Shown: piece after piece, positions 11,101 to 64,000 of the stretch | Layout of the letters: each line of letters opens with the position of its first letter | Numbering within the stretch: position 1 is the first letter of the stretch | From: Blastocystis sp. Blastoise | Lineage: Eukaryota; Protista; Bigyra: Opalinata | Assembly (NCBI GenBank): GCA_039096225.1 | Contig: JBBPEB010000015.1 | Coordinates: forward strand, 1,364,001 to 1,428,000 | Reading direction: 5' to 3' | Length of the DNA stretch: 64,000 nt | The notes under the pieces: generated by a model | What the model saw: the letters and a program-made list of their open reading frames with translations, nothing else | Databases searched by the model: none | What the model was told of the DNA's origin: nothing | Translations under genes and position numbers: made by a program

Positions 11101-14100
11101 AACACTCATATACAAATAAATAATCAAAGTAGAAGTCGAGTTTCTTCTTTTAATAGTGTATCTACATCAACTACACATCCTTCTATATCTGATTCTCCAA
11201 CTATATCCAAACAAGCATCAGTTACTGGTTATTCATCTAATCATAAATCGAATACAAATACAGCATTGTCCAATGATATTCATGTCACACCTTTAACAAC
11301 AACAATAAAGAATTCTTCATTTAAGTCTAAAATACCTACTCCACGAGGTCTTAAGCCACCTTCTACTTTTGGTAAATATCATAGTGCAATTCCTAAACCT
11401 GCTATATCTACTGAATCACAAAATAATAATAAATCTATGATACCTAGTCAGTCTCAGAATAATAATAAATCTACTATATCTACGGAATCACAGAATAATA
11501 ATAAATATACTATATCTACTAAAACCCAAAATAATAATAAATCTATGATACCTAGTCAATCTCAGAATAATAATAAATCTACAATATCAACTAAAGCCCA
11601 TAATAATAATAAACATATGATATCTAGTCAATCTCAGAATAATAGTAAATCCATAACATCTACTCAATATCATAGCAATACTACATCTAAGACATCTACT
11701 CAATCACGCTATAATAATAATAATAATAATAATAAGTCTTCAACATCTATACCTTCAACTCCCTCAAAGAATTCTATTCAAAAAGTAGTTGCTACTCCAA
11801 AGGCATCGATGACTACATCCAAAATAAATAAATCTAATGAAATTATGAATAATATTCCCGTTTCTTATGTTACTTCTGAAATAGTTTCATCTCCTACACA
11901 GTTAACTCAAGAGAATACATTATCTCAGAATACTATAGAATGTGATAATGATGTTGTTCTTGATAATAGTTGTTCAGATGTCAAAGATACTCAGGATTAT
12001 GTATCTCCATATATGAAGTCGTTGACTTCGAAGATTATTCATCAAGATAATATTATAGATGATGATGATAATGAATATGATACTAGTTATGAAAAAGGAG
12101 AAGATGAGTCAGTATATGAACTTCCTCATCTTCAGTCTACAGTTAAGAAACTTAGTCGATCCTCTTATCCTCTTATTGACAAAGATTATTATTCTATTCA
12201 AAAAAAGAATACATTTGAAGCCATATCTCCTAATGAGAATTCTCTATCAAATAATATCTTATCTTCAACAAATATGAATTCTATTCAAGATACATCACAG
12301 TCTATCTATACTTATAACAATACTAATCATACTCCTGATACTAGTTTTGAATCTATAGAAGAAGATGATTCCTTCTTAGAAGGAGTATCTATTCCAAACA
12401 ATAAGAAAAGTCAACCTATTATTCATCATCCCATGAATGATACATATATATCTCAACAAACACCTATATATGATGATGAGCCTCAACAACCTATGGATTC
12501 TTCTTTTGTTTATAATCAAATTTCTAAGATTAATAGTTTACAATATAATATGCCAGATATAAGTTCATTAACACAGAAAGTTATAAAATCCATAGATGTA
12601 CCTACTAATCCTGTATATGATGCTGTAATTGATGATGAAACCAATAGTGTCTCTTCTAATTCTCATGTCTCTACTTCTTTTATATCTCCTCTTCCTTCTA
12701 TATCAAGTCTCAACGATCATTCTACTCAATCTTTAAAGCCTATTATTCCTCTTGATAAAGAACATCAATTAATTCTTGATGATATTGTGAAACATCCTCG
12801 AGATAGTACTTATTTATTAAGTGAATTTGAAGAAGATTCAAAGAGTTTTCGTTCAACAGTAGATACACTCAAAGGTCAACGATATAGTCAGAGACCAAGT
12901 ATGGGTAGTGATTCAACGAAAGATCGAAAAAGTCTTTATTATGGTCGAGAAAGTACAAAAGATGTGAAGAATCGATTAATAACTAAAGGAAACGATAGTA
13001 AGAAGAAGTCTTATTGGGATAATAATGATGATATAATTCAATATAATCATGATAATACAGATCGAGTCATTTCTGCATTAAATCTCCCTATATCATTAAA
13101 ATATAATGAAGATATTATTGATAATTATTTAAAAGAAAAAGAACAAGATCCATTATTATTAACTGAACAAGATGAGAAGATCATGTTAGCTGAGAATTCA
13201 TCAAGTCAAGTAGAAGAATTATTATATGAACTTTCGATACAAATAGATCAGAATCAACAGAATCATGTAGTAATTAGTCAATTAGAGAATATTGTGAATA
13301 CTCAAGAAGATGGTATAGCTCAACTTGAAGAAATATTAATACGAATTGTAGAAGAAATGGAATCAGTTAAAAAGGAGAATATTATTCTCGAGAATAATTC
13401 AATATTGTTACAGAATAAATATAATGACTATAAGCAAAAGTCAGAAAGAGAAAATTCAATGTTGAGAAATCAATTTGATCAAGATAATCATCGTCTTATA
13501 ACTAAATATGAAGATAAATATGCATTATTAGAAACTCAAAAGAATACAGAGATTGAAAGACTTCAAGAGTATCTATTACAAATAGAAAATCAGAATGGAA
13601 TTACCTATACATTAAGTGACATTGATCGAGCTACATATGAAGATCAAATAATGGAATTACAGAAGACAAGTACTTTCCTAGAAAATGAATTAAATAATGC
13701 ATTTAATGAAATAAATAATTTAATTCAAAGGAATGAATCTCTTATTCATAAAGAAGAAAAGAATACGAAAGAAATCAAATCTTTACAAAACACTAAGATG
13801 GAGAATAATATATCTATTTCAAACTTAAAAACTCAACTATCTACTGTTATTAATTGTATAGTTATATTTTATTATATGTTATCATTATTATTTTTTTTTA
13901 TATTTATTATTATATGTTATTATTATTATATGTTATTATTATATGTTATTATTATATATTATTATTATTATATATTATTATTATTATATATTATTATTGT
14001 TATATATAGCTACTTGGGGTATATATGCATTAAATGAATATCATGATAAGATATTAGAATGTTCCAAGCAAATGACAGCTCTTAATTCTTATGCAGATGA

Positions 14101-35123: not shown

Positions 35124-35313
35124 GTTTTCTTTATTAAAAATTTGTTTTGTTTATAAAAAAATGTTTTTAAAAATGTCGCAACTTTTGAACCACTCTACTG
35201 TTTATACATTTTTATCTGATGGATTAAAAAGAAATATTTCAGAGGATTACTTTTATTTTTAGATATACAAGAGTGTTTATGGTATTTAATTCATTTACAA
35301 GTACTAGGGTCAC

Positions 35314-35350
35314 GCCGCAGGTCCGGGGCCTAACGGCACCGGACCGCGGC
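35314..35350 (-). terminator. Helitron A 3' subterminal hairpin (rolling-circle termination signal)
   Basis: Minus strand GCCGC-GGTCCGGTGCC-GTTA-GGCCCCGGACC-T-GCGGC, followed by GTGACC-CTAG|T. Confidence 0.9.
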
Positions 35351-35532
35351 TGCAATGAATAATAAGTGTTTGGTTTTTATACAATTTCTTTCCTTATTAT
35401 CTATAATATATTATATATTATATATTATATATTATATATTATATAATATGTATTATTTATTAAATATTATCTATTAGATGTTACTTATTATATATAATAT
35501 ATTATATATATTATACATTATTTTAATAAAAC

Positions 35533-35602
35533 TTCTTATACTCTATATGGAGAGTAACAATCATTTATTGATTGTTATCAGGTTCAATTCCTGATATAAG
35601 AA
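35533..35602 (+). ncRNA. tRNA-like cloverleaf element, copy 1 (Helitron A 3' region)
   Basis: TTCTTATA/TATAAGAA closing stem; CTCT-ATATGG-AGAG arm; TAACAATC-ATTTATT-GATTGTTA arm; TCAGG-TTCAATT-CCTGA T-arm. Confidence 0.7.
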
Positions 35603-37109
35603 TTAAATAGATTATTTAAATAATATCTGAAAAACTAAAAACAAAAAAAAATATATAAATTCTTGTTTGATTCATTATATTTGTTATTTATTTTTTTTTA
35701 AATATATTTTGTATTTATAAATAGTTTAGTTACTTTTTTAATCATTATGGAATTTCTAAAGCTAATAAATCTCGAAATGGGTCACAATGTGAAGTATTGA
35801 AAAATATTTTTATTTTATTAAATTAATTTAAATAGATTAGAATAAAGTAGTTTAAACTATTTTTAACCATTTCATAAAACTAAAACAAATTTAACACAAC
35901 AATATCAACATTTATTTTCACATTAACGACTTAAACACATAGTTTTAGAATTAATATTAATGAAATCAATCTAAATAGAATTTTTATACATAACAGTATC
36001 AACAATATCGCTTTTAGAGAGACTTTACCATTTCGATATCCACTGTATCAAAATCGTTTTAGACATAACTTTCACACAGTATAGATCTCATTGTATTATT
36101 TATTAATTATAGTTTAATGTCTTGAATCTCTGACCTCATGACGCTTTTTAATACATTTTGAAAAATTGACACACTTATAGTTAATTTAAAACTCTAATAT
36201 TTAAACACTATACTCAACATAACTCTATCAATACATTAGTTACCATTTTAACACTCTTTATAAACATTTTACATTTGGTCATACACTTTTTCAAGAGTAT
36301 TTTTGTCACTTCTTTTAATATAATTTAGACTATAGTTCATAGTTTGATAAATAAAATGTTTTATATTGAATCTCGTCCGTTGAGTAACTTATTTCTACAT
36401 TTAAAAAAATAAACCCCTTTAAACTTGTTTTTAAAAGTCAAAATTTTCATAGTATAATAAAAACACAATTTTAAACAAAGAAGCTAACTCTTTAAAATTT
36501 CTAGACAACTCAAACACATTGTTAATTAACTTTTCAAAAATGAAATTCTCTTAATTTTTAATATGTTGTAGAATTTAGCTTAGTGTATATTAAATCATTT
36601 TTTAGAATTTCGAATCTCTTAGTTTAAGAACCCCTTTTTACAATTTTTTAAATTTTACAACCTTAAACTTACTTTTATGACTTTATATTTACACAATAAT
36701 ATATATATGCAAGATGAATTAGTGGAGAAAAACAAAACTTAAATATCTCAATCATTGACAGTATTAAATCAGTTATACTATATAAAGTTAAAAGTGGACA
36801 ATAGATATTTTAAATTAAATTGAATCCAAACATTTAAAAACTTGACACTATTTAATATATTAAGTAATTGAAGAATTATCTTAATAGTCGACACAATTTA
36901 AATAAAAAAAAAAAAAAGAAAAAGAACAAAACAAAAATAGAACAAAAAAAAAAATTTAAATATAAAATAGCTAAAAAGATAAAAAAAACATAAATAAAAA
37001 AATAATATAAAGAAAAAAAAATAATAAAAAACTATAAAAAATAAAAAATAATAATAATAATAAGAAAAAAAAAAAAAAAAAAAACTAAAAAAAAAAAAAA
37101 TCTAAACAT

Positions 37110-38459
37110 AACCATAACACTAAGAGAACCTATATAGATAAAAGATATATATATATATAATAAGAGATAGTATAATAAATATATCTAACATATATATATA
37201 TACCTTCAGTATTAAAAACTATTCACACCATCACTATATAGATATAAGATATAGATATATTAAAAGAAATATTATAAATATTTGTTATATATATATATAT
37301 ATATATATACCTTTAGATACATTTTTATTATTAAAATGAAAGCTAACATTAGGGTGATAAGATCCCCTATTAGAAAAGACACCTATATATAATATAATAA
37401 ATGATAAAATATATATAAACAATAAATATATATATATACCTTCTAAAGAAGGAACAGAGGAAACACCATGATATCTTAACTGACTTGAAGAACCTATATA
37501 TAATGAAAAGATAATTAATAAATCAAAAAAAAAAGAAAGGAAGAAATAAGAATATACCTGTATCATTATTACCATTAATCCAAGACTCCATAAGAAAAGA
37601 ACGACCTATATAAGATAAAAATAATAATAAACTAAATTAAATTTAAAAAGTAGACATACCTTCATCATTAATACGTTCAGCAACTACAACCACAACAGTA
37701 GAATAACCTATAAAGAAACAGTAATAGACAAATAATAAATAAAAAAAAAATAATAATAAATGAATGACAATATATATATACCTTTAATATCATATGAGCA
37801 GTCTACCTGATCACCAACAACATCCATAGCAACATTTACATCAATAAAACAAACCTATATATATAAAAGTAAAAAAAGAAAAATAAATGAATGACAACAT
37901 ACCTTCAACACCACACAGACATCTATTATCAACATCACTGTTAACATGTACAACAACTGAAGAACCTATATATATAGAAATAATAAAAAAATAATAATAA
38001 AATATAAAAAAAAAAAATAAATGATTGGTAACATACCATCTATAAAGCAAGAAGAACCTACATCAACACCGATATCACTATTGGAATCACTTACAATAAC
38101 AGAAGAACCTATATATAAAGAAAAGTTAAAAAAATAAAAACAAATCATTGACAACATACCTTCACAGTTAGCATAACAGGCAACACCACCACCTCTGTAT
38201 GATACAAATAACATAGAACAACCTAAAATAATATAATAAATAATTAATAAAAAAAGAAATGGAAAATATATACCTTTAAGACCATCAGAGCAAGTACCAC
38301 CAAGACTAAGAACATACATAACTGGATTCTATTGAGTAGAAGAACCTAAATATGAATACTAATAACAAATAGATACAATATACCTGATTTTCTTTGAAAT
38401 ATAAATTATTTTTTATTTCCAGACCTCCACCTTGAAGCAATTTTGTTGTTCTTAGACAT
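37110..38459 (-). pseudogene. Decayed micro-exon array (RepHel N-terminal region) in Helitron A
   Basis: Largely exon-by-exon homolog of 46130-47547 (MSKNNKIASRWRSGNKK vs MPKKTRMSSRRRSENRK). In-frame TAA at 38408-38406 and TAG at 38331-38329. No downstream RepHel exons. Confidence 0.8.
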
Positions 38460-38653
38460 CATAATTAATAATTTAATATATAAATGAGTATTAGATTATG
38501 TATTTAACAATCCTATTTCATTTGAATTAATAAATATAATAGGGTCTATTTTTAAAATATGCTTCTTAAAACATAATAGAAATCAAAAATAGCCTTAATT
38601 TTTCATTGATTTTATTACAAAAGTAATAATTGGGTCATTCTGGTTTAAAATCA

Positions 38654-38669
38654 TTTTGGGTACCCAAAA
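38654..38669. promoter_or_regulatory. Perfect 16-bp palindrome TTTTGGGTACCCAAAA in the putative bidirectional promoter of Helitron A
   Basis: Identical to 47740-47755 while the flanks diverge. Lies ~195 bp upstream of the minus-strand ATG, with two further GGGTC motifs nearby. Confidence 0.5.
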
Positions 38670-39234
38670 AACATAGTTCTTTACTCTTTTTTAAATATTT
38701 TATTGTATTGATTGACTTAGTGTGTTTTATTTATTTATTTAAAGTTATTTAACTTAGTATTATATTTATCTATTTATATACTAATTTATTTATTTAAAAT
38801 AATACACTTCTTTATAGGATTCTCTTGTATTTGCCTTGGTTGTCATGGTTAGTGGTTCTTGAAGTGGTCCTGGTTAAATGAAATGGTTTATTTAGTGTCA
38901 GGTATATAAATATATATATTTTTTATAATATTTCATTTTTAATTCATTTGTTTCTTTAATTGTTTCTTTTTTTATTATCTTTTTGGTTTATATTTTCTTT
39001 ATATATAATTAATCAATAGATTATTAGTTATTTTTATTCTATAGGGAAGAAAATGTAACTGATGTGTGTGTTATACTCTTCGTTTTTTCATGTCTTTCTT
39101 TTAAATCTGTGGTTTCAGGTTGATTTATATGTATATATTTATATTTTATTTATTATTTTTGTTATTTATTGTTTCTTTATTTATTTATATTTTATTTATT
39201 AAATTTATTTTATTTATTTATTTATTTATTTATT

Positions 39235-39277
<43 letters not shown>

Positions 39278-39292
39278 TTATACTAGGGTAAC

Positions 39293-39329
39293 GCCGCTGG
39301 CGCACCGCCTAACGGCGACGCGCCGCGGC
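39293..39329 (-). terminator. Helitron B 3' subterminal hairpin
   Basis: Minus strand GCCGC-GGCGCGTCGCC-GTTA-GGCGGTGCGCC-A-GCGGC, followed by GTTACC-CTAG|T. Confidence 0.9.
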
Positions 39330-39529
39330 TGCGTTGTTCAGTTGTGTTTTAAATTTTTTTATTAAACTTTATAGAACAAAACCATTTTTTTATTATAAAC
39401 ATTTTAAAAACAAATAAAAAGTGAAAAAGTAAAAAATTAAAAAGAACAAATATTTAACAAACATAAAACAAATAAAACAAAAGAAACAAAAGAAATAAAA
39501 GAAGAGAGGAGAAAAAAAAAATAAAGCAT

Positions 39530-42500
39530 TTAATTATTTAGAGTAGACCTGAAGACCACGTTCTTAGTAAATATTTCATTACTACTACTAATCATCTTAC
39601 CTTGAGAGACACTATCAACTACCTTAATAAAAAGAGAATTGAAAGATCGAGCACGACTGAAAGCAACATAGAGTTGACCATGAGAGAAGACAGGACGATC
39701 TAAATAAACACCAACTCTTTCAAATGTTTGTCCTTGAGATTTGTTAATAGTCATGGCAAAGGCTAAACGAATAGGAAATTGTCTTCTGGATATAATAATA
39801 GGAAGATCTTCAGGATTTGAATTACAGATGATTCTTGGAATAATAACAGTACGTTCATCAATAGTAAGAGAAGGAGGAGGATTTAAAATAGTAGCAGTAA
39901 TATTATTTGATCCTAATCGAGTTACTATAAGTCTAGTACCATTACATAATCCTTTAGAAGGATTAAGATTTCTTAAAAGCATAATGATACAACCTATTTT
40001 TAAATTTAATATATGAGGAGGCATTCCAGAAGGTGTTTGAGAATTGATAAACTCGATAGGATAATTTGATTCTGGATCATCTGTTTCAGAATCAAGAATA
40101 GAATCAGAAGAGATATAAGGAGTAGTAGTTCCAGAAAGAAGATTATCTACAATGAAATCATTTAAAGTACCAACACAATCATTAGTAGAAGCTAATATAA
40201 CAGAAGAAGCTAATCGTTTAATATCAGAATCAAGAGAAGTATTGATTCGATGTCCAAATACAGTAACACATAAATCATCATTTACAATACATTGAGGAGG
40301 AATAGGAATATAATCTATATCTAAATGATGACTAATAGTATAATTATTAGAAAGAACACCATCTCCTACTTGTAATAACCATTGTCTAAAATCATCTGCT
40401 CCTTCTAAAGCTCTCATATTTCTCGATAAATGAATAACATTATTTTTGATAGAATTCCATAATGAACAAAACTTTATAGAAGAACTAACAATCTGAGCTT
40501 GAGTTCCTTTTCTTATAACTGGTAAACATTGTCTGAAATCTCCTCCTAATACTACTGTTTTACCACCAAAAGGAATATCTAATTCTGTATTCATTATATC
40601 ACATAATAATCTATGTACTACCATAAAGCAATCACCTTTCATCATAGGAGCTTCATCCCATATTATTAAATCAGCTATTCTTATTTCTTCTACTTTTCTT
40701 CTATCTCTAGCTAAATCTATATTTGAAGTAGAATCAGGATCAACATTCAAAGGAATACCAAATTGTTTATGAGCTGTTCTACCACCTGGTAATAAAGTAG
40801 AAGCAATTCCTGTTGAAGCTACAGGTAATACATTCTTATTATGTCCACGTAAATAACTTAATAAACTATTATATAAGAAAGTCTTTCCACTTCCACCTGG
40901 ACCATCAATAAAGAAACATAACTTATCTTCTATTCTACTACTTTCTATTGAATGAATTACTCTATCAAATGCATTTCTTTGTTCTTCATTTAATAATTCT
41001 ATTACTCTATTAGCTTCTTGTAATTCTAAAGTAGGATTATAATTATAATCATTATAATGATGTTGTTCTTCTACTTGAGGTAATCCTAAATCATTATAAT
41101 TCACTCCTATACTTATCATCATCTCTTTTATATCTTGTAAAGTACGTATTTCATAATCTTGAAGAACACTATTAGTATCATCTTCTATAACACTTGATGA
41201 ATCTAAATCTTGAGCTAAAGGAGTATTTATATAATCTATTTCATTATTATGCATTGAATGTTTATAATCTTCACTAAGAAATGATTTAAATCGAATCCAA
41301 AACTCTTTTACATTTGTTAATAATGATTCTGAAATATAAGTAATAAATAATTGTCTCAATTGACATGGAGTAGCAAAAACAATAGCTTCTGAAAATGAAT
41401 CAAATACTTCTCTTTCATTATTCAATAATCCTCTTGCTATAGCTGCTTCACTAAAGGTTCTATAAGGTTCATTACTATTCAATCCTTTTACTATCTTCAA
41501 AGAATCAAAACTATCAGCTCCTTTCGTATTCAATAATAATAATCTTAAAGCATATCGTTCTTTATCTTTTGGATTCACATAATACATTCTTCCTAAAGCT
41601 TTTATATCTCTCTGACGTCTATTCCAAGTATTTGTATTTGATTTCCATACATAATATTTTGGTATTTCATGATAAGCATAAATAGGATATTTCTCATCTA
41701 ATATTTTCAATAATTCTTCTGATATATTATCATCATCTACTTCATAACTATTTATTCTATTTATCTCTTCTAAACGAACTTGAATCAATTCTCTTTCTTC
41801 TTCTACACTATTCATATTACGAATACCATGCTTCTTCTCTATATAATAATAAGTATATATCTTTCTTTGATTCTGAACTTCTTTCTCTAAATCAAAGTAT
41901 TTTGTTAATTTAGTACCTTTCTCTAAACTATTTCTTAATGCTTCTTCTTCATGTCCTTCTCGAAATAATATATATGGATCATCAGGTAAATGAATAGGTA
42001 ATCTATTAATAGAAACAGAATTATAAGTAATTTCAAAACAATTCAAACGATAAGAAGCTTCAGGAGGAGAAACATATCGACAATCTAAATAAGCTTGAGT
42101 TTCATCTACTATTCCATTATCATTCACTCTTCTTAATTGAGCTATCACAGAATCATTTCCTTTTAATGCATATTTATATATATATTTAGTACTTTGAATA
42201 TTACAACAGACTTCTACATTAATATGAGCTTGATATTTCAATAATAAATAAGGATTATAAGGAACTACCCAACGATTATCAATGGTATAAGTATTGTGAC
42301 TACGAATAAGAGTAATAGTTCTATCAGGAATATTTCTTCTTTGATATAAAGGATAAGAATTTAAATGACAATTAGTTTGCTCTATATATTCTTTTGGAAA
42401 TCTCTTACTACATTTACCTGTTGATCTATCAATACAAACACAATTCGTATCATAATCAGGACCACATGGACCATGAATCATATGTTTCTTAACTAATTCA

Positions 42501-44538
42501 TAAAGAAGAGGAGTTGATTCTTTATCAGGAATCTCTGCACTTATTATACTATCTACTTCATCTTCTGTTCTATATTTAGAATTCGTATCTAAAATAATTA
42601 ATATATGAGAATGTGGTAAACCTCTCTTTTGGAATTCTACTGAATATAATAAAGCTTCTACAGTACCAAATATATTCTTATCCTTTATATCAGAAAGCAA
42701 TTGTTTCAACTTTAAATGAAACACTCTTGAAACTAAATCTGGAAATTCATTAACAGTATAACCTTCTGGAATATTATTCTTTATTTCTAGCCAATCTGGA
42801 TTGCAAGTAAATGTAATAAATAAATCAGGTTTACCATATTCTCGAACTACACTCATAGCATCCATATATTTCTGTTGTAAATTTCTTGGACTACCAACAA
42901 AAGAAGAAGGTAATATAATAGCTTTGCCTATTCTATCTATATTTCTATCATTCTCATTTATTTGATCTCCTCTCTCTTCTAACATATTATTTATATTCTG
43001 ATAAGTTGAAGCTCTTAATTTATTTTGATTATTTCGTATATAATTAATTCTATTTTGTTCTACTCGTATATAATTATCAGTAATATATTGTAAAGTTAAT
43101 TTCTTATATTTTAATAAATAATTATCATAAGGTGGATCTTTCATTTGAAGCATATAATTATAATATTCTAACATCGTAATAGTTATTTGATTAGAACGAT
43201 TCAATGATAATAAATCTGGATACCAACCTTGTCTTCCAGTTGGAAACATAACTGGATAAACCATACAATCTATATATGAATTTGTATTCTTCATTACTAT
43301 ATATTGACCTGAAGTATAACGATTCTGTTCATTATTACTATTAGTAGCTACTATTTCCATACCACTTCTAGGAAAACAACAATAACTTCTTTCTGGCATT
43401 ACTCCTCCTTCTCTATATTGATATATTACTGCTACTTCATCTACTTGAGGAGTATTATATCTTCTTATATCAGGTACTTCTCTTCTTTGTTTCTTAAATT
43501 CTATTAATAAATTAATATTACTTCTATTCATTTGACTATTCTCTTCTATTACTTCATCTACTCTTTCTCGAAGTGAATTATATATTTGAGCTAATGGATG
43601 ATATTCTCTTATTGTACTATCTAATATTTGTAAAATATTTGGTTTTAAATCACAAAAATATCGATTCATACTTCTCATATGAGTAGCTTCATCTCCATCT
43701 ATCATATAATATTGATTGAATACAGGATGTCTTGTAGGATCATTCACATCAAAATCTAAAGCACTCTTAAAAGTATGATATATATTACCTCCACATTTAA
43801 ATAGTAATGGTCCAGAAGAATTTCTTAAATCATCATCAGAAGTATTATTTCCAGCTAAAGAAGCTAAAGCAACAGAATTATTATATCGAATTATATTATT
43901 AATAAATTCTCTTGAATCTGGATTATCTCTTTGTAATAAAGAACGAATAGTATTAGGAAGATCAGGAAGTTCAGGAAGAACTACTTTACCACTACCACAG
44001 CAAGTATAAAACTTATCATTCATTCCTTTCTCTAATTCAAAATGTTTAGCATGACAATATTCACAATGAACATTAAAATCACCTAAATAATTAGCTTTAT
44101 AAGTATTCAATGCTTCATTTAATACGAAATCACCATGAGAATCTATATAAAATAATATAAAATAAATATTAAATATATATAAATACTTCTTTGAATAGAA
44201 GCAATACAATTATGTAATCCAGGATATAATAATCTTTGTTGATTATCTATAAAAATAATTTATTATTTAATTATTCATAAAGAATTATAGAATATAAATA
44301 TCATACAAATATCTAAAGCTCTTCTTCTTCCTCTATTAATAATAGGATGAATAGTTATGTCTTCTTCAACTATAAAAAAAGTATTAAATAAATATATTTA
44401 AATAATAAAAAACATACTATTATCTGTTATAGGTCTTCTAATAGTTCTTACAACTGGTATTTCATCATTATTTTGAGTATTACTATTAATATTAGGAAAA
44501 GGATCAATATAATCAGAATCAGAATCATTATCAGAAAA

Positions 44539-44575
<37 letters not shown>

Positions 44576-47547
44576 TCACTTGAACTACTACTACTACTAC
44601 TACTATTAGGTATTGTTGTTATAATTTCTGATTCATTATCATTATTTAAATTAATATGAGGAATATTTGTCAGAATACTTAAAGGAGGAAGAATAGGACT
44701 TAAATCAGGAATAGTTAAATAACTATTCATAATGGAATTAATAGATCTATTATTTCTTTGTATTATTGTTTCATTATTATTAGTATTAATGTTATTTATA
44801 GAATGATTCGTATTATCATTAATGATTGCAGAATTATTATTGTTAGATATACTTACATTAGTTGGAATAGTAGTAACAACAGGTAAAGAGTGTGAAGAAG
44901 CATTAATAGAATCATTATTATTATTAGAAACTGAAATATTATTTTCTGTAGGTTGTATAATAGTAGTTGATATAGGAATAGATTGATTATTATTATTTAT
45001 TGGACTTTGAACAATAGATATGTTATTGATTGATTGATTTATTGGATTCATTTGATTGAATAAGTTTGAACCATTATTTAATATAGAATTATTATTATTT
45101 ATTTGTGAATAATTATTATCTATATCAATATCAATATTGTTATTTGAAATATTGTTTTGAATGTTTTGTAAAGGAATATTATTTTGTATATTAAAAGTCG
45201 AAAACAAAGCTAAAGGTTTTGAGTTAAAACCAAATGATTTAGATAAATCATTATTATTTATTTTATCCTTATTGGAACCTATATATATTAATAGTTAGAT
45301 ATTAATTATAATTTATGGTAAAGTTAATGATATGATAAGTCTTTTATTAAGTGTATTAAGTCTCATTATAGTTAATGAAGTAATTACTAATTAATATAAA
45401 TATATCATAGAGTATCTATGAAATATTTATCAATCCATAAAGTAAACACTTTATTAATTAATAATTATCTTCAATATTAAACATAATGAAAGATAATATT
45501 ATAATTAATGAAAACTAATATTAAATAAGTATAGATATTTAATATTGTATTATTTATTAAACAATCCTTAAGATCCGCTCATAACGGACTTCTATAACTA
45601 TTGTGCTTTGTTACAACATATCTAAAACATATCACTAACTACCCAGTTTATATCTATGTACAATGCGAGTAAGTGGAGAAACTCAACACTTAATAAGAGC
45701 TCAAGCATCGATAGTATATAACATCGGTTAGGCTATATCGAATTAGAGGCGAACAATAGTCAACAATAGTATGAGTCACACAGGCGATCAATAGATGTTT
45801 TAAATATAATTTAATACAAATATTTAAAGACTCCACACTATTCAATATTAAGTAATTCAAGAATTATCTTAATAGTCGACAACCTTACCATTTTTTTTCG
45901 ACACAATATAAATTAAATAAATCAATTTTAACAAAACAAAAAGAAAACAAAAGAAAGTATTCTATTAAATATTAACATACTAAGTAGCACAGCTAAACGA
46001 AGTAGTTAAATAAATAAATAGACACTATAAGAAAGCAGATAATAGAAAGCTATTATCTGTGAAAAGAAAATAATAACAAAATAATAATAAGCAAAAGAAA
46101 AGAAAACTAAAAGATTATTTTTAACATACCCATCACATTATTAGTACCTATAGAGACAAAAGACATAGATATATATATAATAAGAGAAGTATATAATAAA
46201 TATATGTAATATATATATACCTTCAGCAATTAAAGAATTATCAATACTAACATCTATAGAGACAAAAGACATAGATATATATATAATAAGAGATATTATA
46301 ATAAATATATGTAATATATATATACCCTTAGTCATTGAAGAACTATTATCATCAACACCTATAGAGACAAAAGACATAGATATAATATATTAAAAGAAAT
46401 ATATAATAAATATATGTAATATATATATACCTTCAGCAACTGAAGAATCACTCACACTAACACCTATAGAGACAAAAGACATAGATATATATATTTAAAA
46501 TAAGATAAAATAAATATATGTAATATATATATACCTTTAGATATAGTTATATTTGTAACATCAGCACCAACAGGATGATATTCTCTCACATTAGAAGACA
46601 CACCTGTATATTATCAATGAAAGAGATAATAATAATAATATATATTTATATAAATAATAAATACATATATATATACCTTCTAAAGAAGAAGCTGAAGAAA
46701 AGCCAGGTCTTAACTGAGTTAAAGAACCTATATATAAATAAAAGAGTAATAAATTAAAAATAAATTAAAAAAGAAGAAAAGAATAAATATCTATATACCT
46801 TTAGCATCACTACCATTAATAGAAGGACCTATATATATTTATAAAATAAAATAAAGAAAGTCAAATAGGAGACAAATGAAATAGAGCATACATACCTTCA
46901 TTATTAAAAGAATCAGCAACAGCACTCATAGCAACAGAAGAGCCTATAAAGAAATAGTAATAGGTAATAAAAATAAAAAAAATAAAATAAGTGAATGTCA
47001 ACGTACCTTCAAGACCATTAGAAGAGTTAACATCACCATCAATAGCAACAACAACGGCATTCACAACAACAGAAGAACCTATATATATAAACATAAGTAA
47101 AAAAAGAAAACAAATGAATGATAACATACCTTCAAGACCATTAGAAGAGTTAACATCACCATCAACAGCTCCAGAAACAGAGTCCACAACAACAGAAGAA
47201 CCTATAGACAAATAAAAGTTAAAAAGAAAGACAAATGATTAGCAACATACCTTCACATTCATAAGAACAGGCAACAACACCATCACGATGTGATTCAAAG
47301 GACACAAAAGAACCTAAGATAATATAAAATAATAAAACAAAAAGAAATGTATAAATATATACCTTCAAGACCATATTGATAAGCACCATCACCATCAATG
47401 ACATCCATACTTGTATCCTGTTGAGTAGAAGAACCTATATATGAATAATAATAAAGAATGGTATAACATACTTGACCGTCTTTGAGAAATATAGCTTTTC
47501 CTATTTTCAGACCTCCGCCTGGACGACATCCGAGTCTTCTTAGGCAT
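39530..47547 (-). CDS. Helitron RepHel transposase (HUH Rep + Pif1-family SF1 helicase); 17-exon model, 2088 aa
   Basis: Exons 47547-47472, 47434-47363, 47313-47251, 47201-47130, 47078-47007, 46943-46896, 46828-46799, 46727-46677, 46603-46535, 46463-46431, 46358-46326, 46253-46221, 46147-46130, 45278-44418, 44369-44307, 44246-44187, 44142-39530, all GT-AG and in frame. Motifs CEYC..CCGSG, GKPDLFITFTCNPDW, EFQKRGLPHSH, KYIYKY, GPGGSGKT, WDEAPM, GDFRQ, TINKSQGQT, FSHGQLYVAFSR. The RepHel call is near certain; joining of the 5' exons is inferred. Confidence 0.9.
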
Positions 47548-47739
47548 CCTATTTAATAACTAATTATAAAATAAGTATTTTTATGAAGAAAACAAAATCT
47601 TATTTTGATTTCAATTTTTGTAAAATAGGGTCAACATTTAAAATATGTATCTTTAAAAATATAATGAATCATAATTAACCTTGAATTTTTATTAATTTTA
47701 TTGCTAAACTGATAATTGGGTCATTTTTTGTTAAAAACA

Positions 47740-47755
47740 TTTTGGGTACCCAAAA
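47740..47755. promoter_or_regulatory. Perfect 16-bp palindrome TTTTGGGTACCCAAAA in the putative bidirectional promoter of Helitron B
   Basis: Lies between the RepHel ATG (47547, minus) and the plus-strand exon at 47903. Conserved with 38654-38669. Confidence 0.5.
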
Positions 47756-48374
47756 ACTATAGTTTTTTACATTTTTTAATTATTTGATTATATTGATTGT
47801 CTGTATATGTTTTATTAATTAATTTGATATTGTTTAGTTATTATTTTTATATTTATATATATATATATATTTATTTATTTAAAATAATACACTTTTCTAT
47901 AGGATTCTTTTGTATTTGTCTTGGTTGTGGTGATAGAAGCTTCTTGAAGTGGTCCTGGTTGTGCTACATGGCTTATTTATTGTCAGGTATATAAGTATAT
48001 ATATTTTTTATAATATTTTCTTTTTCATTTGTCCATTCATCTGTTTTACTTATTATTTTATTTATGTATTTTATTTATTTTTTCTTTATATATAATTTAT
48101 TCAATATATTGCTAATTATTTTTATTCTATAGGAAGAAAATGTTGTTAATGTGTTGTGGTTTTCGTTTTTTTATGTCTTTCTTTTTTAATCTGTGGTTCC
48201 AGATTAATTTATAGGTATATATTTATATTTTATTTATTATTTTTATTATTTATATGTTTATTTATTTATTTATTTATTTATTATATTTATTTATTATATT
48301 TATTCATTTATTTTATTTTATTTATTAATTTTATATTATTTATTTATTTATTTATATGTTTTTATTGTATATAG

Positions 48375-48797
48375 GTTTAATAGTCTTCTTATTCTTTCTT
48401 TCTTCTTCCTTCTTCATTTTACTTCTTCCTTATTCTTCTTTCTTCTTCCTACTTCTTCCTGCTTCATCATTCATCATTCTTCCTGCTTCCTTCTTTCTTC
48501 TTCCTCCTTCTTCTTTCTTCCTACTTCATTCTTCTTCACCTTGATTCTTCATTCTTCCTCATCCTTCTTTCTTCTTCCTACTTCTTCCTGCTTCATCATT
48601 CATCATTCTTCCTGCTTCCTTCTTTCTTCTTCCTCCTTCTTCTTTCTTCCTTCTTCCTTATCCCTGATTCTTCCTTCTTCCTTATCCTTGATTCTTCCTT
48701 CTTCCTTCTTCTTCATCCTTAATTCTTCCTTCTTCTTCTTCATACTTCCTTATTCCTCATCCTTCCTACTTCTTTCTTCCTCTTCATTTCCTTCTTA
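48375..48797. repeat. Pyrimidine-rich (CTT/CTTC) low-complexity tract of Helitron B; homolog in A at ~50492-50880
   Basis: About 400 bp, strongly C/T-dominated on the plus strand, directly upstream of the tRNA-like element in both elements. Confidence 0.85.
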
Positions 48798-48844
48798 TTA
48801 TATATATATATATATTTAATTATTATTATTACTCTTTAAACTCC

Positions 48845-48911
48845 CTTTATGCTCTAGAAGGAGAGAAGCAATCATTATAGATTGTTTTCAGGTTCAATTC
48901 CTGACATGAAG
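48845..48911 (+). ncRNA. tRNA-like cloverleaf element, copy 2 (Helitron B)
   Basis: CTTTATG/CATGAAG stem; CTCT-AGAAGG-AGAG; AAGCAATC-ATTATA-GATTGTTT; TCAGG-TTCAATT-CCTGA; T-runs just downstream. Confidence 0.7.
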
Positions 48912-50930
48912 TCTTATTTTTCTTTTTTTAAATATTTTATTTATATATTATTATATATATATATTCTCTTTTTTTAATTTATTTTAATCCAGTTTAATTT
49001 ATACTTTTCAATTTTGACCTTATATATATATATCTAACTTTTTATAGTTTTTTTAGACTTACTCTTCTCAACAACAGTCACAATGAGAACAAATCCATTT
49101 TAACTGAAACAACTAAGTAATCTCAAAACTGTTTGAATCAATCAGTATAGACGTGTATGACATAATTTATGTATTTAAACTCAATTTTAATAATTAAAAG
49201 TAAACAAACCAAACATACATGTTGACTTTAAAACTTTAAACTCAGTGTTAAATGGTTAGTTTTAAAGAGTAGACACAAAACATTGATTTATACTAAAAGG
49301 AATGAAAACAATCAACTCTTGATACAACTTTACCATTTGATAAAACACTCATCCACAATATTTTTCAAAGTTCTTTTAGTAAAGTGTTTATATAGACATA
49401 TAATGTATAAAATGAAAGTCAACTTCTTGAATCTCTTATTTTAGGACAGTCTTTAAAACATTTTGACAAATAGAGAACATTTAACTTGTTATTTAAAGCT
49501 AATATTTTAAGAGTAGACTTGACTTGGATGAATATAAACAACAGCCAACACTTTAAACATTTTAAGACATACTTTACATTTTGCCGATACACTTTGACCT
49601 TCATAATTTTGACTCTCCTTTTAATATAGTATAGAGTTATAAGTCTAGTTTATTAAATAAAACTTATTATATTGAATCTCTCACTCTAAGACCACTTAAT
49701 TCACACTTTTCAAAATTGTGACACTCAAACTCGTTATTTTAAGACTTTGTTTTAACTATAGTAGTTTGATGACCTATTGATTACTATGATACAATATTAG
49801 TCGATTATAAGAAGATCGAAGAAAATATGGATCACTCAATAATCGTCCTCAGGAGCTCAAAATTGGTACACCTAGGTTTTTCGACCTCCTGAATCAGAAT
49901 ATCATGTCAAATTAAGAATCTAAATTTGACCGTTAAGGTCTCACGTGTTCAATATGAAAAAGTATTAAAAAATAGATAAATATAAAGAATAAACACGGAT
50001 AACGTATATTGTGGGATTGAGAAAAAATCAAGTTTACCCCATGTTTATTTTTCAATTGTCTGGTCAACAATTTTTATCGGGATGATCCCAAAGAGCCAAT
50101 CAAAAACGACTCAAAAATCATATTTTCTGTTTTTTTATTAATAACTTTTTAATTATAAATAATATCGCTTAACCAAATATATGTTGCAAAACTACACGTT
50201 ATATCGTATTGAACTGTGTTTCAACCAAAAGTTAACTCCCCGTAAGTTTAGAGGAGTTGAGGCTACAAACTATAGTATATAGTAGCCAATCAAATGCATT
50301 TTCCAAAAACTGACCAATGGGAATTTTTTTGCCTATTCTCATATATATAGTAATGATTTATTATATTTATATGTTTATTTATTTATTATTATTTATTTAT
50401 TTTATATGTTTATTTATTTATTTTTAATATTTATTTATGTATTTATTAATTATTTATATTATCTTTTTTATATGTTTTCTATTTTATATAGGTTTAAAAT
50501 CTTCTTATTCTTTTTTTTCTTCTTTCTTCTTCCTTCTTACTTCTTTCTCATTCTTTCTACTTCCTATTTCCTTCTTCATTCCTTCTTCCTTCTTCCTATT
50601 TCCTTCTCCATTCATGCTTCCTTCTTCCTATTTCATTCTTCATTCATGCTTCCTACTTCCTACTTCCTACTTCCTTCTTCCTTCTTCCTCATCTTTGATT
50701 CTTCTTACTTACTTCTTCTTCATTCTGGATTCTTCCTTCTTCCTCATCCTTCCTTATTCTTACTTCTTCTTACTTCCTTCTTTCTCATCCTTCTTCCTCA
50801 TCCTTCCTTATTCTTACTTCTTCTTCCTAATCCTTCCTACTTCCTTCTTCCTCATCCTTCCACTTCATTTCCTTCTTATTATATATATATAAATATATAT
50901 ATTTGATTATTATTATTATTTATAAACTCC

Positions 50931-50996
50931 TTTTATGCTCTAGAAGGAGAGAAACAATCATATAGATTGTTTTCAGGTTCAATTCCTGACATAAAG
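50931..50996 (+). ncRNA. tRNA-like cloverleaf element, copy 3 (Helitron A 5' region)
   Basis: TTTTATG/CATAAAG stem; CTCT-AGAAGG-AGAG; AAACAATC-ATATA-GATTGTTT; TCAGG-TTCAATT-CCTGA; T-runs just downstream. Confidence 0.7.
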
Positions 50997-51029
50997 TGTT
51001 ATTTTTTTATTTTTTAATATTTTATTCAC

Positions 51030-51084
<55 letters not shown>

Positions 51085-51429
51085 TCTTTTTTAAATTTAT
51101 TTTAAACCATTTTAATTTATACTTTTCAATTTTGATCTTAAACATATATATCTAACTTTTTATAGCTTTTTTAGACTTCCTCTTCTTAACAACAGTCACA
51201 ATGAGAACAAATCTATTTATACTCAAACAAATAAATTATCTCTAAACTGTTTGAATCAATCAATATAGACGTGTCTGACATAATTTATCAATTTAAACTC
51301 AATTTTAATAATTAAAAGTAAACAAACCAAACACACATGTCGACTTTAAAACGTTAAACTCAGTATTAATAATTTATTTTTATAGAGTAAACACGAAACA
51401 TTGATTTATACAAAAAGGAATGGAAACAA

Positions 51430-52340
51430 TCAACTCTTGATACAACTTTACCATTTGGCAAAACACTCATCCACAATATTTTCTAAAGTACTTTTCATAA
51501 AGTGTTTATATACACATGCTATCTATAAAATGAAAGTCAACTTCTTGAATCTCTTTGTTTAAGACACTACTTAATACATTTTGACAAATAGACAACCTTT
51601 AACTTATTATATAAAGCTAATATTTTAAAATTAAACTTGATTTAGACCTATGAACACATTAGTCAACACTTTAGACTTTTTAAAGACACTTTACCATTTG
51701 GTCATACACTTTGATCAAAATATTTTTGTCCCTCCTTTTAATATAATATAGGTTATACACTCTAGTTTAATGACTAAAAGCTCTTATTTTGAATCTCGTC
51801 CTCTAAGTCACTCATTTTTACATTTTCTAAAAATTAAGACCCTTAGAGTTGATTTTTTAAGTTAATTTTTCTACAGTGTTCCAAAAACACGATTTTGCTC
51901 AAACTGAAGTAAAAATAAATTTTAAATAATAGTCACAACACCTCACACATCCATTCTTTAAAAATTATTTTAACTGTACTTTTGATATGTTGTAGAGCTA
52001 CTATAGCTGTACACTAATTAATATCTCTAAATTTTTTATTCATAGTTTAAGACTATGTTTTACACATTCTTTTTAAATTTGACAACCTTAAACTATTTAT
52101 TTAAAGCTCTTATTCATAAAATAGACTTGATACATGATTCTAAACACATATATAAACCCTTTTACTTTTTAAGACACATTTTGTCATTTGGTCATACACT
52201 TTGACCTTCATAATTTTGACTCTCCTTTTAATATAGAATAGAGTTATAAGTCTAGTTTACTAAATAAAAGTCATAATATTGAATCTCTCACTCTAAGACC
52301 ACTTAATTCACATTTTTTCAAAATTGTCACTTTTAAACTC
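51430..52340. repeat. Degenerate ~245-bp tandem repeat array; homologous arrays at ~36010-36700 and ~49310-49740
   Basis: TTGAATCTC anchors at 36122/36366/(36610), 49427/49672 and 51545/51789/52279. The ACTTTACCATTTGG..ATACAC anchor shows the same spacing. Confidence 0.7.
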
Positions 52341-53762
52341 GTTATTTTAAAACTCTGTTTTAACTATAGTAGTTTGATGACCTATTGATTACTATGCTAC
52401 AATATTAGTCCATTATAAGAAGATCGAAGAAAATATCGATCACTCAAAAATCGTCCTCAGGAGCTCAAAATCGCTACACCTAGGTTTTTGGACCTCCTGA
52501 ATCAGAATATCATGTCAAATTGAGAATCTAAATTTGACCGTTAAGGCCTCACGTGTTCAATATGAAAAAGTATTAAAAAATAGATAAATATAAAGAATAA
52601 ACACGGATAACGTATATTGTGGGATTGAGAAAAAATCAAGTTTACCCCATGTTTATTTTTCAATTGTCTGGTCAACAATTTTTATCGGGGTCACCCCAAA
52701 GAGCCAATCAAAAACGACTCAAAAATCATGTTTTCTGTTTTTTTATTAATAACTTTTTAATTATAAACAATATCGCTTATCCAAATATACGGTGCAAAAC
52801 TACACGTTATATCGTATTGAACTGTGTTTCAACCAAAAGTTAACTCCCCGTAAGTTTAGAGGAGTTGCGGCGACAAACTATAGTATATAGTAGCCAATCA
52901 AATGGTTTTTCCAAAAACTGACCAATGGGAATTTTTTTGCCTATTTGCTTTATAATAGTAATGATTGTGTCACTCTATAGTATTTTTAAGATTATTAATA
53001 CAATAATTCAAGAGTATATATAAATTCCTGTAAGTTTATTCTTGAAAAGTTTAACGATAATTGATGCAATATTAAATGAATATAAATGATATTTTATGCT
53101 ATATTATATTTATATATGTTCTTATTGTGGAAATTGAATAATTTGATTACAATTACTATTAATAATTATTTAAAGAATATTATATTATGTAAAATTAAAA
53201 AATGAAATATCATACTTGGTAAATATACAAATATTCACGTATAAGCCAAGAAAAAAAAAGAATTAATTAGAGTATTAGGTAGCTTTTATGTAATTCTGAG
53301 AAATAAAGGATTTCATTGATCTCAAATGAACTCATATGCATCAATCTTGTTCAAATAAGTTTTTTAGAACATGAATGTGTTCATAAGATAAATAATTTAT
53401 TCTTCTATTACTGTAATTTTTCATCTATGTATTCTATCTTTTTAATTATATGATGTGGTTTAATTAATTTCTTTATCTAATGCTTACACGTTGTAAAATA
53501 AGATAAGTAAAAAAATAGAAATTATTATGAAATTTGCGGTATATTATTAGGAATAATTCTGAAAGAATATAAATACTTCTGTTCACGTTGGGTTATTTGA
53601 AAAATTGAAATGTCTTGTTTTCCATAGTTATTATATATAACAAAAAAATTGGTTTAAAACGTAATGGATCCGATGTGTTTCCAAAGGGCGATTTAGAAAA
53701 AGAAAAAGTTCTCTTTTTTGCTCTTCTCTGCATTGTTTCTATTACTTTCTTTTCGTAATACA

Positions 53763-58339: not shown

Positions 58340-58423
58340 GCCAGTTTGTCCGAGTGGTCTAAGGAGGGGGACTCAAGATCCTTTATGTGAAAGCATGCGT
58401 GGGTTCGAACCCCACAGCTGGCA
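58340..58423 (+). tRNA. tRNA-Leu(CAA), intronless
   Basis: Acceptor GCCAGTT/AGCTGGC plus A73; D-arm TGTCCGAGTGGTCTAAGGAG; anticodon loop CT-CAA-GA; long variable arm; GTGGG-TTCGAAC-CCCAC; T-run terminator follows. Confidence 0.95.
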
Positions 58424-61800: not shown

Positions 61801-64000
61801 ACTCCTCATTATTTTACTGTTACTTATTATTTTAATAGAGCTGAACTTTTTGATAAGTATTGTATTGTTTCTAGTTTTGATTCTCCTCAATATGATCCTG
61901 CAGATTGGGTTGTTTCGGGTTCTATGGATGGTACTACGTTTACTGATTTAAGTACTGTGTCTAATGCTTTTTGGAAAGATAGACTAGAAAGAAAATGTTT
62001 CTATATGCCTAATAATAATAAAGCTTATATTACATATAAATGGACTATTACTAAAGCTGCTGTTATTCAAGAAAATAATAGATATGCTGCTAGTGAAATT
62101 AAATTCTATTTAGAAGATATTGAATCAATTGTCATTCCTGATTTCCGTTTTACTACTTCTATTATAGTTGCTTATAAGGGAGTTACTGTTCCTACTCTTT
62201 TAGTTTCTTCTGAATATTATTATGATTTCACTATTTCTCCTGCTCTTCCTACTGGTATTACTATGGATTCTTCTAATGGTAACTTAAGTGGTATTCCTAC
62301 TCAACTTCAATCTACTACTACTTATACTATTAGTGCTAAGAATATTCACGGTATTGCTGTAACTACTACTATTACTTTCTCTGTTTCTATTTGTGCTGTT
62401 GCTAATACTGCTTTTATTCTTAAATTTGATTTTGAAGAAGATGCTGGAGAAGCTTCATGGACTCTTAAGGATGCTTCAGGTACTGTTATTGATACTAGAA
62501 CTACTTCTATTAATCACTCTACTCAATATTTCTCTTTCTGTAAACCTAAAGGTATTTATTCTCTTGTTTTATCGGATAGTATGAATGAGGGTTGGGGTTC
62601 TGGTTCTTATACTATCTTAGATATTGATAATAATGTTTATGTTACTGGAACTGTTGGTGCTGGGGAATCTCCTAAAACTGTTAATGTATATATTGATCAA
62701 GCTACTGGTTCTTCTACTTCTTGGAAATACTTAACTTTTGGTACTGATGTTCCTTCTGGATGGTATACTATTTCCTTCTCTGATACTGCTTGGTCTACTG
62801 GTATTTCTGGATCTTTCCCTGCTCTTACTGGTATTAGTCAATATTATAGAACTACTTTAAGTATTACTTCAATTGATGCTTCTTATGCTGGTTATGAGAT
62901 TGGTGTCAAAGGATATGCTGGTATTGCCGTTTATCTTAATGGTCAAGAAATTATAAGATCTAATCTTCCTTCTGGTACTCTTTCTTCATCTACGTTAGCC
63001 ACTTCTGAACTTTCTAATTGGATCTTCTTCAAGATTTCTATTAGTTTAATAATTAATATTCTTCTTAATGTTGGCAATAATGTATTAGCTGTTGAACTTC
63101 ATAAGAAAGATACTCTTCCTTCTATTAATGATTTCACTTATTTCACTTCTTTTATTCCTTCTGGTGAGTATAGAGTAACTGATGGTGTTGCTTGGTCTGA
63201 TATTGAAAAGACTGGTGATGAAGGTACTGATATGTTATTTGATAATAATGTAGATACTTCAGTTGTGAGTGGTCCACGATGTGTTGGTGCTATTTATCAA
63301 TATACTTTTAATAATGGTCGTAAAGAATTTATTAATCATTATAAGATTACGAATGGCAATACTTGTAATCAAAGAACTCCTTCTAGTTGGAGAATAGAAG
63401 GTTCTAACGATAATGGTATTACTTGGACATTATTAGATTATGAACACCAACAATTTTTTACCTCATATAAACAAACATTCTCTTATGATTTCTATGCTTC
63501 TCAACCTTATAATTCCTATCGATTTATTGCTACTGAATGTGATAATACTCCTCTTGATAGAAACACTTGTGGTGATGGATATTTTCAATTATCTGAATTT
63601 GGTTTATACATTAATAATAAAGCTGTTTCTTGTGTATCTGATGGTATATGGGGACCTGCTGTTGAAAGTGGTTATTCATTCCAAGAATGTCCTACGGGTA
63701 GTACAGGTATTCAAAGAAGATTATGTACTGCTGGTGTATTTGGTGAAATTCAACAACTTTGTAGTGTAGCTGCTCCTACTCGTCCATCTTATATTGGTTC
63801 TCCTTTTACTTATCACAAGAATATAATTGTATCTCTTTCTCCTATCCTATCGGATATTGAATCGACATATACTATTGATCCAGCTCTTCCTAATGGTCTT
63901 ACTATTAATGCTTCTACCGGTGTTATTTCTGGTACTCCTCTTGCTAATTCTGATATTACTACTTATACTATTACTGCTACTAATGCTGGTGGCTCTGTTT
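58832..64000 (+). CDS. Large secreted/surface protein, paralog of the gene at 1-6734 (He_PIG-like and galactose-binding-like domains); truncated by the window end
   Basis: Signal peptide MRQFISLISILGLISL. Small exons to ~60085, then an open exon from 60191 to the end with FTVTPDLPTGLALNPDTGVISG, FTISPALPTGITMDSSNGNLSGIP, YTIDPALPNGLTINASTGVISGTP and PSSWRIEGSNDNGITWTLLD. Confidence 0.85.

Follow-up and report, generated by a model that had tools for sequence, protein, structure and literature searches.

A non-decoding tRNA-like module with a covarying fold in Helitrons of Blastocystis

Helitrons of the locus and the modules they carry

The DNA considered here is a stretch of 64,000 nucleotides (the window) from Blastocystis sp. 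"Blastoise" (GCA_039096225.1), which belongs to the low-GC isolates from tortoise gut reported in PMC10690189, a paper that makes no mention of Helitrons or tRNAs. The window is eukaryotic DNA with a GC content of ~25%, from a genome of 23% GC. It was examined together with 15 further loci of the same assembly (~410 kb), each fetched around a RepHel gene, for ~470 kb in all. The sample represents one strain and RepHel-centered loci, and copy counts outside Helitrons apply to those loci only.

An autonomous Helitron of 11,074 bp, H1, occupies positions 39283–50356 on the minus strand of the window, as established by its termini and an exact empty site. Its RepHel ORF (39530–44209, minus strand) is the longest minus-strand ORF of the window. 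It encodes Helitron_like_N (PF14214, 2.2e-56), PIF1 helicase (PF05970, 2.1e-64) and Pif1 2B (PF21530) domains and is 100% identical over residues 300–1559 to WA158_002607 of Blastocystis sp. Blastoise (NCBI). At the 3' terminus (39283–39341, minus strand), a GC-rich hairpin and CCCTAG are followed by a host T, and this terminus is identical in 11 other copies with unrelated flanks. Upstream of the ORF, sequence comparison delimits region B' (45903–48365, minus strand), which contains 123-bp tandem repeats and is in part annotated as N-terminal exons in related copies, and a conserved 5'-terminal segment (49473–50356, minus strand) with 91–94% identity between copies. An AT-rich (TTTA)n tract (48220–48380) and a CT-rich microsatellite (48395–48810) lie between B' and the module described below, together spanning 48220–48810.

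H1 is itself inserted in the (TTTA)n tract of a non-autonomous Helitron, H0, which measures 6,587 bp in all. The insertion splits H0 into a 3' part (35304–39282), with its own GC hairpin and CTAG at 35304–35358, and a 5' part (50357–52964) that starts with 5'-TCATTACTAT at 52964, both on the minus strand. A second H0 insertion with different flanks is found at L007:14963–21547, and the empty site of H1 is L007:18939–18940 (AT), where the flanks are 99.2–99.6% identical and the junction falls exactly between A and T. At least 12 copies of this family (family 1), whose flanks are not related, share the same ends: a host A precedes 5'-TCATTACTAT on one side, and a GC-rich hairpin with CCCTAG abuts a host T on the other. 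The A before the 5' end and the T after CTAG are present without exception, and there is no target-site duplication (TSD).

The original prediction placed three copies of a tRNA-like cloverleaf in the window. All three are present on the plus strand: w1 (35533–35602) in the 3' part of H0, w2 (48845–48911), the copy first flagged, in H1, and w3 (50931–50996) in the 5' part of H0. They score 97.4, 88.4 and 85.1 bits, respectively, with the covariance model introduced below. A common four-arm fold is formed in 3/3 copies, with an acceptor stem, a 4-bp D-like arm, an 8–9-bp central arm and a T arm. In w2, these parts are a 7-bp acceptor-like stem, a CTCT/AGAG arm with the loop AGAAGG, an 8-bp central arm, and the T arm TCAGG-TTCAATT-CCTGA. 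Folding z-scores of the three copies on the plus strand range from -3.4 to -4.8, with 0/200 shuffles as good. The T-arm 17-mer is identical in w1–w3 and occurs exactly three times in the window versus 0.16 expected, and a flanked alignment of the copies reveals ~70 nt as a conserved island. The finer points of the predicted structure also proved accurate. The stems abut directly, with no U8-N9 spacer or variable loop, the "anticodon" loop drifts (a central loop of 5–7 nt with unconserved sequence), and compensatory changes are real both at the innermost acceptor pair (A-T versus G-C) and at the outermost central pair (T-A versus A-T). The stack of acceptor and T arm amounts to 12–13 bp.

Further copies were sought with a motif and a covariance model built from 11 distinct copies, and were counted at ≥49 bits; E-values of the model come from a brief calibration. 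The tally for the window and the 15 loci is 31 module copies, 19 of them distinct and many of the 31 nearly identical. That Helitrons carry the module is shown by the termini and the exact empty site, and 26/31 copies lie in family-1 units. All 26 Helitron-borne modules are antisense to their element; since the copies inherit their orientation, this uniformity counts as one observation.

The position of the module within its element varies. In H1, w2 lies 1,445 bp inside the 5' end and 9.6 kb from the 3' end, antisense to RepHel and ~0.9 kb upstream, on the opposite strand, of the RepHel start as annotated in related copies. Across the autonomous elements, the module is found 1.4–2.4 kb from the 5' end, and ~0.9–1.5 kb upstream of the annotated start of RepHel in divergent orientation. 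In H0, w1 is 229 bp inside the 3' end and w3 is 1,968 bp from the 5' end, both antisense to the element. The shorter non-autonomous units (2.7–5.4 kb) have one module each, ~175–230 bp from the 3' end, apart from one L133 copy at 664 bp. The three settings share only low-complexity DNA upstream of the module.

Several other identities for the module at this locus were considered and rejected. It is not the terminal hairpin of the Helitron, whose true 3' end is a separate GC-rich hairpin with CTAG. The reading of the module-bearing repeat (35484–36698, 48794–49743, 50875–52123) as an independent tandem repeat or outward promoter unit was dropped because the repeat ends on the right at what is, on the opposite strand, the Helitron 5' TC. 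Membership in a neighboring hAT-like gene (33050–34953) was set aside, as homology to other loci begins at the Helitron 3' end, 35304. A tyrosine-recombinase attachment site was also discarded, the Phage_integrase gene near one L005 copy not being recurrent.

Some additional features of the Helitrons deserve mention. H1 sits in the (TTTA)n/(AAAT)n tract of H0, and at L002:9080–9100 the same AAAT repeat again comes after a family-1 3' end and leads into the region upstream of the following element, which suggests that the family's own microsatellite is a preferred Helitron landing site. The 5'-terminal ~890 bp (49473–50356, 52072–52964) is the most conserved non-coding part of the Helitron. The ~90 bp next to the 5' TC include a TATA-like run as well as two CCAAT/Y-box-like motifs. 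Public annotation starts a neighboring gene model inside this segment at L005:10001 and L003:18298. At L135:18000–20205, a 2.2-kb 3' region shows 98–100% identity with L003, L002, L004, L005 and L134. RepHel genes sharing it fall in different 90% protein clusters, and the Helitron families concerned have no GC-rich terminal hairpin like that of family 1.

Other parts of the window are also of note. Just outside the 3' end of H0 is a string of ORFs (33050–34953, plus strand; 418 aa, 80 aa and others) that may be a decayed hAT-like transposase, the 80-aa ORF having a weak match to the hAT dimerisation domain (E = 0.12). A 1,791-aa ORF at 8662–14037 (plus strand) has 36-bp tandem repeats (11322–11753) and no Pfam match, and in parts it shares ~61–64% identity with the sequence upstream of the RepHel ORF. 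Two adjacent ORFs of 565 and 467 aa at 316–3598 (minus strand) contain He_PIG putative Ig domains, and 62211–63396 resembles them in inverted orientation.

Selection on the fold and departure from tRNA

The original prediction rested on covariation among three copies, and with a covariance model over more copies the signal strengthens as sequences are added. For 11 distinct sequences, 96.7% of cells are paired and 12/25 pairs have changed on both sides; for all 19, the values are 93.4% and 16/25; and for the 14 distinct Helitron-borne sequences only, 96.6% and 10/25, with values this high in 0/500 shuffles in each case, in a comparison that ignores kinship among the copies. The covariation score of the 11- and 19-sequence sets is 0.35–0.37, versus 0.07–0.11 in controls with the 3' partners slid by 1–3 columns, or ~4–5 times lower. 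When given the alignment alone as input, RNAalifold returned the same cloverleaf de novo with 15 compensated pairs. In the Helitron-borne copy L132:7668–7739, the 9-bp central stem is wholly rewritten and its pairing is still perfect.

Central-stem base pairs 26-48 and 27-47, which are absent from canonical tRNAs, also covary; selection therefore concerns the aberrant architecture and not an ancestral tRNA. A coding constraint is excluded by the loop indels of 1–2 nt between copies. The arms differ in how they are conserved: in Helitron-borne copies, the D and T arm sequences never vary, while the acceptor and central stems covary. The D-loop GG and GGTTCAA..CC are invariant in 19/19 distinct sequences. 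The T arm had been described as invariant, which is true of the Helitron-borne copies, where it is identical, but not of those outside Helitrons, whose T loops include TTCAACT and TTCAAAC and in which the closing pair can be A-T. Flanking sequences of different subfamilies have 58–65% identity or are unalignable. What can be aligned between subfamilies is the module region (about -100 to +20 around the module), a ~350-bp block ~540 bp downstream (74–79%), and the 5'-terminal segment. With its stems maintained by compensatory mutations, the module is almost certainly a selected RNA, neither tRNA nor debris.

A genuine or organellar tRNA insert is ruled out by Rfam and ARAGORN. The sole bona fide tRNA of the window is a GC-rich, canonical tRNA-Leu(CAA) at 58340–58423 (ARAGORN, Rfam), and the whole-window Rfam tRNA search matched no module copy. 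On w1, RF00005 yields 20.1 bits, versus a gathering threshold of 29 bits. For w2 and the copy L003:8686–8757, an orphan that is the most tRNA-like relative, no RF00005 match was obtained at E≤10, even in ~130-nt searches. None of w1–w3 is called by ARAGORN, which calls only one orphan copy, as Ile-AAT, in a register where 4/7 acceptor pairs form (by inspection). As a rule, there is no 7-nt anticodon loop with U33, the central loop being 5–7 nt long with no conserved anticodon. Moreover, the 8–9-bp central stem takes up the positions of 26 and 44–48, compared with 5 bp in a canonical anticodon stem. The module does possess a tRNA elbow, i.e., the D-loop GG and a T-loop TTCAA on a 5-bp T stem. 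The central claim of a transposon-borne, non-decoding tRNA-like structure is thus upheld: the fold is under selection as judged by covariation, it lies inside Helitrons, and it fails the tRNA tests.

Five of the 31 copies are located outside recognizable family-1 units (L003:4397–4468, L003:8686–8757, L005:2821–2892, L010:16682–16753 and L135:21637–21704). These are the most divergent of the set, with pairing mostly retained, and two of them reside in weakly homologous 2.7-kb contexts resembling host DNA. According to the original prediction, copies dispersed outside Helitrons with TSDs and A-tails would point to an ordinary tRNA-derived SINE. Dispersed copies do occur, at 5/31, but none of them has an A-tail, a TSD or a shared SINE body, which argues for a host-resident relative or source gene and not a SINE. 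Homology around the module extends for ~100 nt upstream and for only 20–77 nt downstream, with no shared body or tail. The five copies are best taken as host-resident relatives, and they may be the source of a capture.

At L010:16624–16753, a family-1 3' CTAG lies 57 nt upstream of the orphan copy in the same orientation. The idea that Helitrons target the module was rejected, since this is a single case and the second orphan of the L010 type, in L135, is 1.4 kb from the closest Helitron end.

In the same genome, the RepHel families of L004, L134, L135, L003 and L005 have no module of their own, and module matches near these RepHels are family-1 non-autonomous units or orphans. A search with the RepHel N-terminus for other Blastocystis strains returned only the query's own cluster, and pattern scans of metagenomes yielded nothing related to the Blastocystis module. 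The 120 metagenome loci obtained with a looser pattern were rejected as relatives, being tRNA arrays of the usual kind or an unrelated repeat; the covariance model tops out at 46 bits on 100 of the 120. Two of the metagenomic tRNA arrays hold, between ARAGORN-called genes, a tRNA-like sequence that is itself uncalled (L064:328–399 and L110:280–351, with 46 and 32 bits by the module's covariance model). Dozens of the termite-gut and other JGI metagenome contigs (L013–L131) share a repeat terminus with TCAGGTTCAAGTCCTGATATGGACCGGCGATT and unrelated sequence upstream (e.g., L031:31–393, with tandem copies in L031). This repeat resembles the terminus of some abundant mobile element or a satellite and is not related to the Blastocystis module.

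Strand, Pol III-like signals and competing explanations

Two kinds of evidence indicate the strand on which the fold is selected. The tRNA-sense strand has 17 G·U cells versus 4 C·A, the latter stemming in equal parts (two each) from a single decaying copy and an orphan that aligns poorly. The sense-strand fold is also more stable in 11/13 copies. For example, w2 folds at -19.4 kcal/mol in the sense orientation versus -11.3 kcal/mol on the RepHel-sense (transposed) strand, where z = -1.4 and the acceptor stem is lost. The reverse complement also gives a cloverleaf in w1 and w3. Taken together, the G·U excess and the folding energies argue that the selected fold is on the tRNA-sense strand, in an RNA antisense to RepHel, rather than in the ssDNA intermediate of transposition.

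The original prediction had offered a Pol III unit as one of two possible functions. The B box GGTTCAATTCC is invariant in all Helitron-borne copies and an exact fit to GGTTCRANNCC, and the A-box-like D arm is a partial match, with ~6–7 of 9 specified positions fitting (counted by eye). A T4+ run occurs within 12 nt in 7/13 distinct copies versus a background of 14.8%, figures that come from non-independent copies in a genome of 23% GC, where T-runs are frequent anyway; the active subgroup of w1, L10b and L5a has no T4 run for 66–89 nt. The pattern of constraint fits A and B boxes plus an elbow, and T4+ runs are near in most lineages, but one subgroup lacks them.

The explanation that accounts best for these observations, and that stands about an even chance of being correct, is that the module is a small RNA gene, a non-decoding tRNA mimic carried as cargo by one Helitron family. 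It would have been captured once, the source being a tRNA-like gene of the host that still has relatives outside Helitrons. The module would act as a self-contained Pol III type-2 unit, with the A-box-like D arm, the B box in the T arm, and, in most lineages, a T-run terminator a few nt downstream. Its ~70-nt transcript would take on a tRNA-like L shape through the elbow of D-loop GG and T-loop TTCAA, and would be trimmed by RNase P and RNase Z, with CCA possibly added. Given a four-way junction without linkers, a true tRNA L shape may not be reached. The module would be retained because it helps the Helitron, either by the RNA itself or by a TFIIIC/Pol III complex that serves as a chromatin barrier and keeps the region beside the RepHel promoter open, although any such benefit is purely conjectural.

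The other function originally offered was a signal by which the antisense transcript is processed. This would be a longer Pol II transcript, cut by RNase P/Z as at the mascRNA of MALAT1; the cut would define the end of an RNA that is antisense to RepHel or runs towards the Helitron 5' end. The 12–13-bp stack, conserved elbow and sense-strand G·U pairs are all consistent with such a signal, as is the high conservation of the Helitron 5'-terminal segment, which lies downstream on the module strand. Still, this reading is improbable. The upstream context differs between settings, with no ENE-like or other conserved upstream structure seen, and in non-autonomous units there is usually only ~175–230 nt of microsatellite and terminal hairpin upstream, so that a long transcript would have to be initiated beyond the element. 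A better fit is a self-contained Pol III unit, because the module has been retained in three different positional contexts, and a signal that relied on transcription from upstream would not stand such changes. In addition, promoter boxes better explain the invariance of exactly the D and T arms (the A- and B-box sites) while the acceptor and central stems change yet stay paired, the B box matches its consensus exactly, and over half of the distinct copies (7/13) have a T4+ run close downstream.

The same invariance of GGTTCAATTCC and the D arm in Helitron-borne copies would be expected if the module worked as DNA only, its boxes bringing TFIIIC/Pol III to the vicinity of the RepHel promoter, where the complex would serve as a chromatin barrier or positioning element, and the RNA playing no part. 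The divergent placement upstream of the annotated RepHel start in autonomous elements agrees with this, but the compensatory changes in the acceptor and central stems and the asymmetry of G·U versus C·A are left unexplained, and the module is also kept in non-autonomous units with no RepHel promoter; we consider the DNA-only reading quite unlikely. No more credit is due to a single-stranded DNA structure that would aid rolling-circle transposition, as a pause or termination aid or a site resembling a single-strand origin. Helitrons do move through ssDNA, cloverleaves form on the reverse complements of w1 and w3, and in non-autonomous units the module is near the 3' end. A speculative ssDNA-structure role has likewise been suggested for tRNA-Cys in Helitron-annotated repeats of Arabidopsis (PMC10701932). 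However, the transposed strand is RepHel-sense, where G·U pairs turn into C·A mismatches and the recently active autonomous copy w2 folds poorly, a canonical GC hairpin with CTAG already terminates every unit, and in autonomous elements the module is as far as 9.6 kb from the 3' end.

Least probable of all is a neutral passenger, i.e., a captured tRNA pseudogene or tRNA-derived SINE whose apparent conservation merely reflects the youth of its copies. Helitrons do capture host DNA, many copies are nearly identical, and five lie outside family-1 units. Nevertheless, the module remains 93–97% paired through double substitutions where the flanks have diverged to 58–65% or beyond alignment, the copies lack an A-tail, TSD or shared SINE body, and homology extends upstream instead of downstream, the opposite of what a retroposed Pol III transcript would leave.

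A more speculative proposal, to which we give only a very slim chance, is that the tRNA-mimic RNA assists Helitron transposition in trans, as a cofactor. As a product of antisense transcription, the RNA would be complementary to the transposed RepHel-sense single strand, and so could hybridize, after excision, to the ssDNA circle of any element of the family. There it could prime or mark complementary-strand synthesis as an RNA-primed equivalent of a single-strand origin or, alternatively, recruit a host tRNA-binding factor to the intermediate. If this were true, non-autonomous elements would keep the module as a cis annealing site.

Known tRNA-like elements and the significance of the module

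Both tRNA mimics of selfish elements and tRNA-derived modules in SINEs are already well known. The vtRNAs of murid gammaherpesvirus 68 (MHV68) and the tRNA-like structures (TLSs) of plant viruses engage host tRNA machinery without decoding, the MHV68 units driving miRNA hairpins and the plant TLSs being aminoacylated 3' genome ends. The Blastocystis module resembles them as a tRNA mimic encoded by a selfish element, but differs from the MHV68 vtRNAs in that no hairpin cargo follows it and the carrier is a Helitron, not a virus. It has in common with tRNA-derived SINE heads that it is tRNA-derived, non-decoding, equipped with a B box and an A-box-like sequence, and multiplied by a mobile element. 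In contrast to a SINE head, the module is internal to a rolling-circle DNA transposon, antisense and not terminal; it is not itself the RNA being copied; it has no tail, body or TSD; and its full cloverleaf, including the acceptor stem, is kept by covariation. To our knowledge, SINE heads generally have no full cloverleaf kept in this way.

Non-decoding cloverleaves with a tRNA elbow are also known from the host side. The mascRNA and menRNA of MALAT1 and NEAT1 are read by RNase P, RNase Z and the CCA-adding enzyme (PMC8457004, PMC11693755). The module shares their non-decoding cloverleaf and elbow, and its 12–13-bp stack has a substrate-like geometry, but mascRNA and menRNA are 3'-end signals of host lncRNAs that follow a triple-helix element, whereas the module is transposon cargo with no conserved upstream RNA element. 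As structured DNA in a rolling-circle element, the module also invites comparison with the canonical Helitron 3' hairpin and with rolling-circle single-strand origins; unlike the 3' hairpin, it is separate from the GC-rich hairpin and CTAG, and folds better on the non-transposed strand.

Helitron and tRNA-type sequence have also been associated in a tRNA-Cys cluster of Arabidopsis that overlaps Helitron annotations (PMC10701932). A Helitron-captured tRNA would, according to that study, be the first captured non-coding RNA, but the Helitron there is unconfirmed: the genes are genuine tRNA-Cys genes, and Helitron prediction tools confirmed no element. In Blastocystis, by comparison, Helitron ends and an empty site are demonstrated, and the cargo is not a tRNA and is conserved in both autonomous and non-autonomous lineages. 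Full-text literature searches found no description of a tRNA-like module in Helitrons, in agreement with the original prediction, and no description of Helitrons in Blastocystis.

Helitrons are known for capturing fragments of protein-coding genes that later decay. A structured ncRNA gene that selection has kept while autonomous and non-autonomous Helitrons diversified would add a new type of cargo to those known for Helitrons, and would rank among the rare tRNA mimics encoded by DNA transposons. It would also provide a testable handle on whether eukaryotic rolling-circle transposons use the Pol III or tRNA-processing machinery of their hosts, and on the role of non-decoding tRNA-like RNAs. 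The setting is a clean and recently active Helitron system, with an exact empty site and copies 99% identical, in a culturable protist for which RNA-seq already exists.
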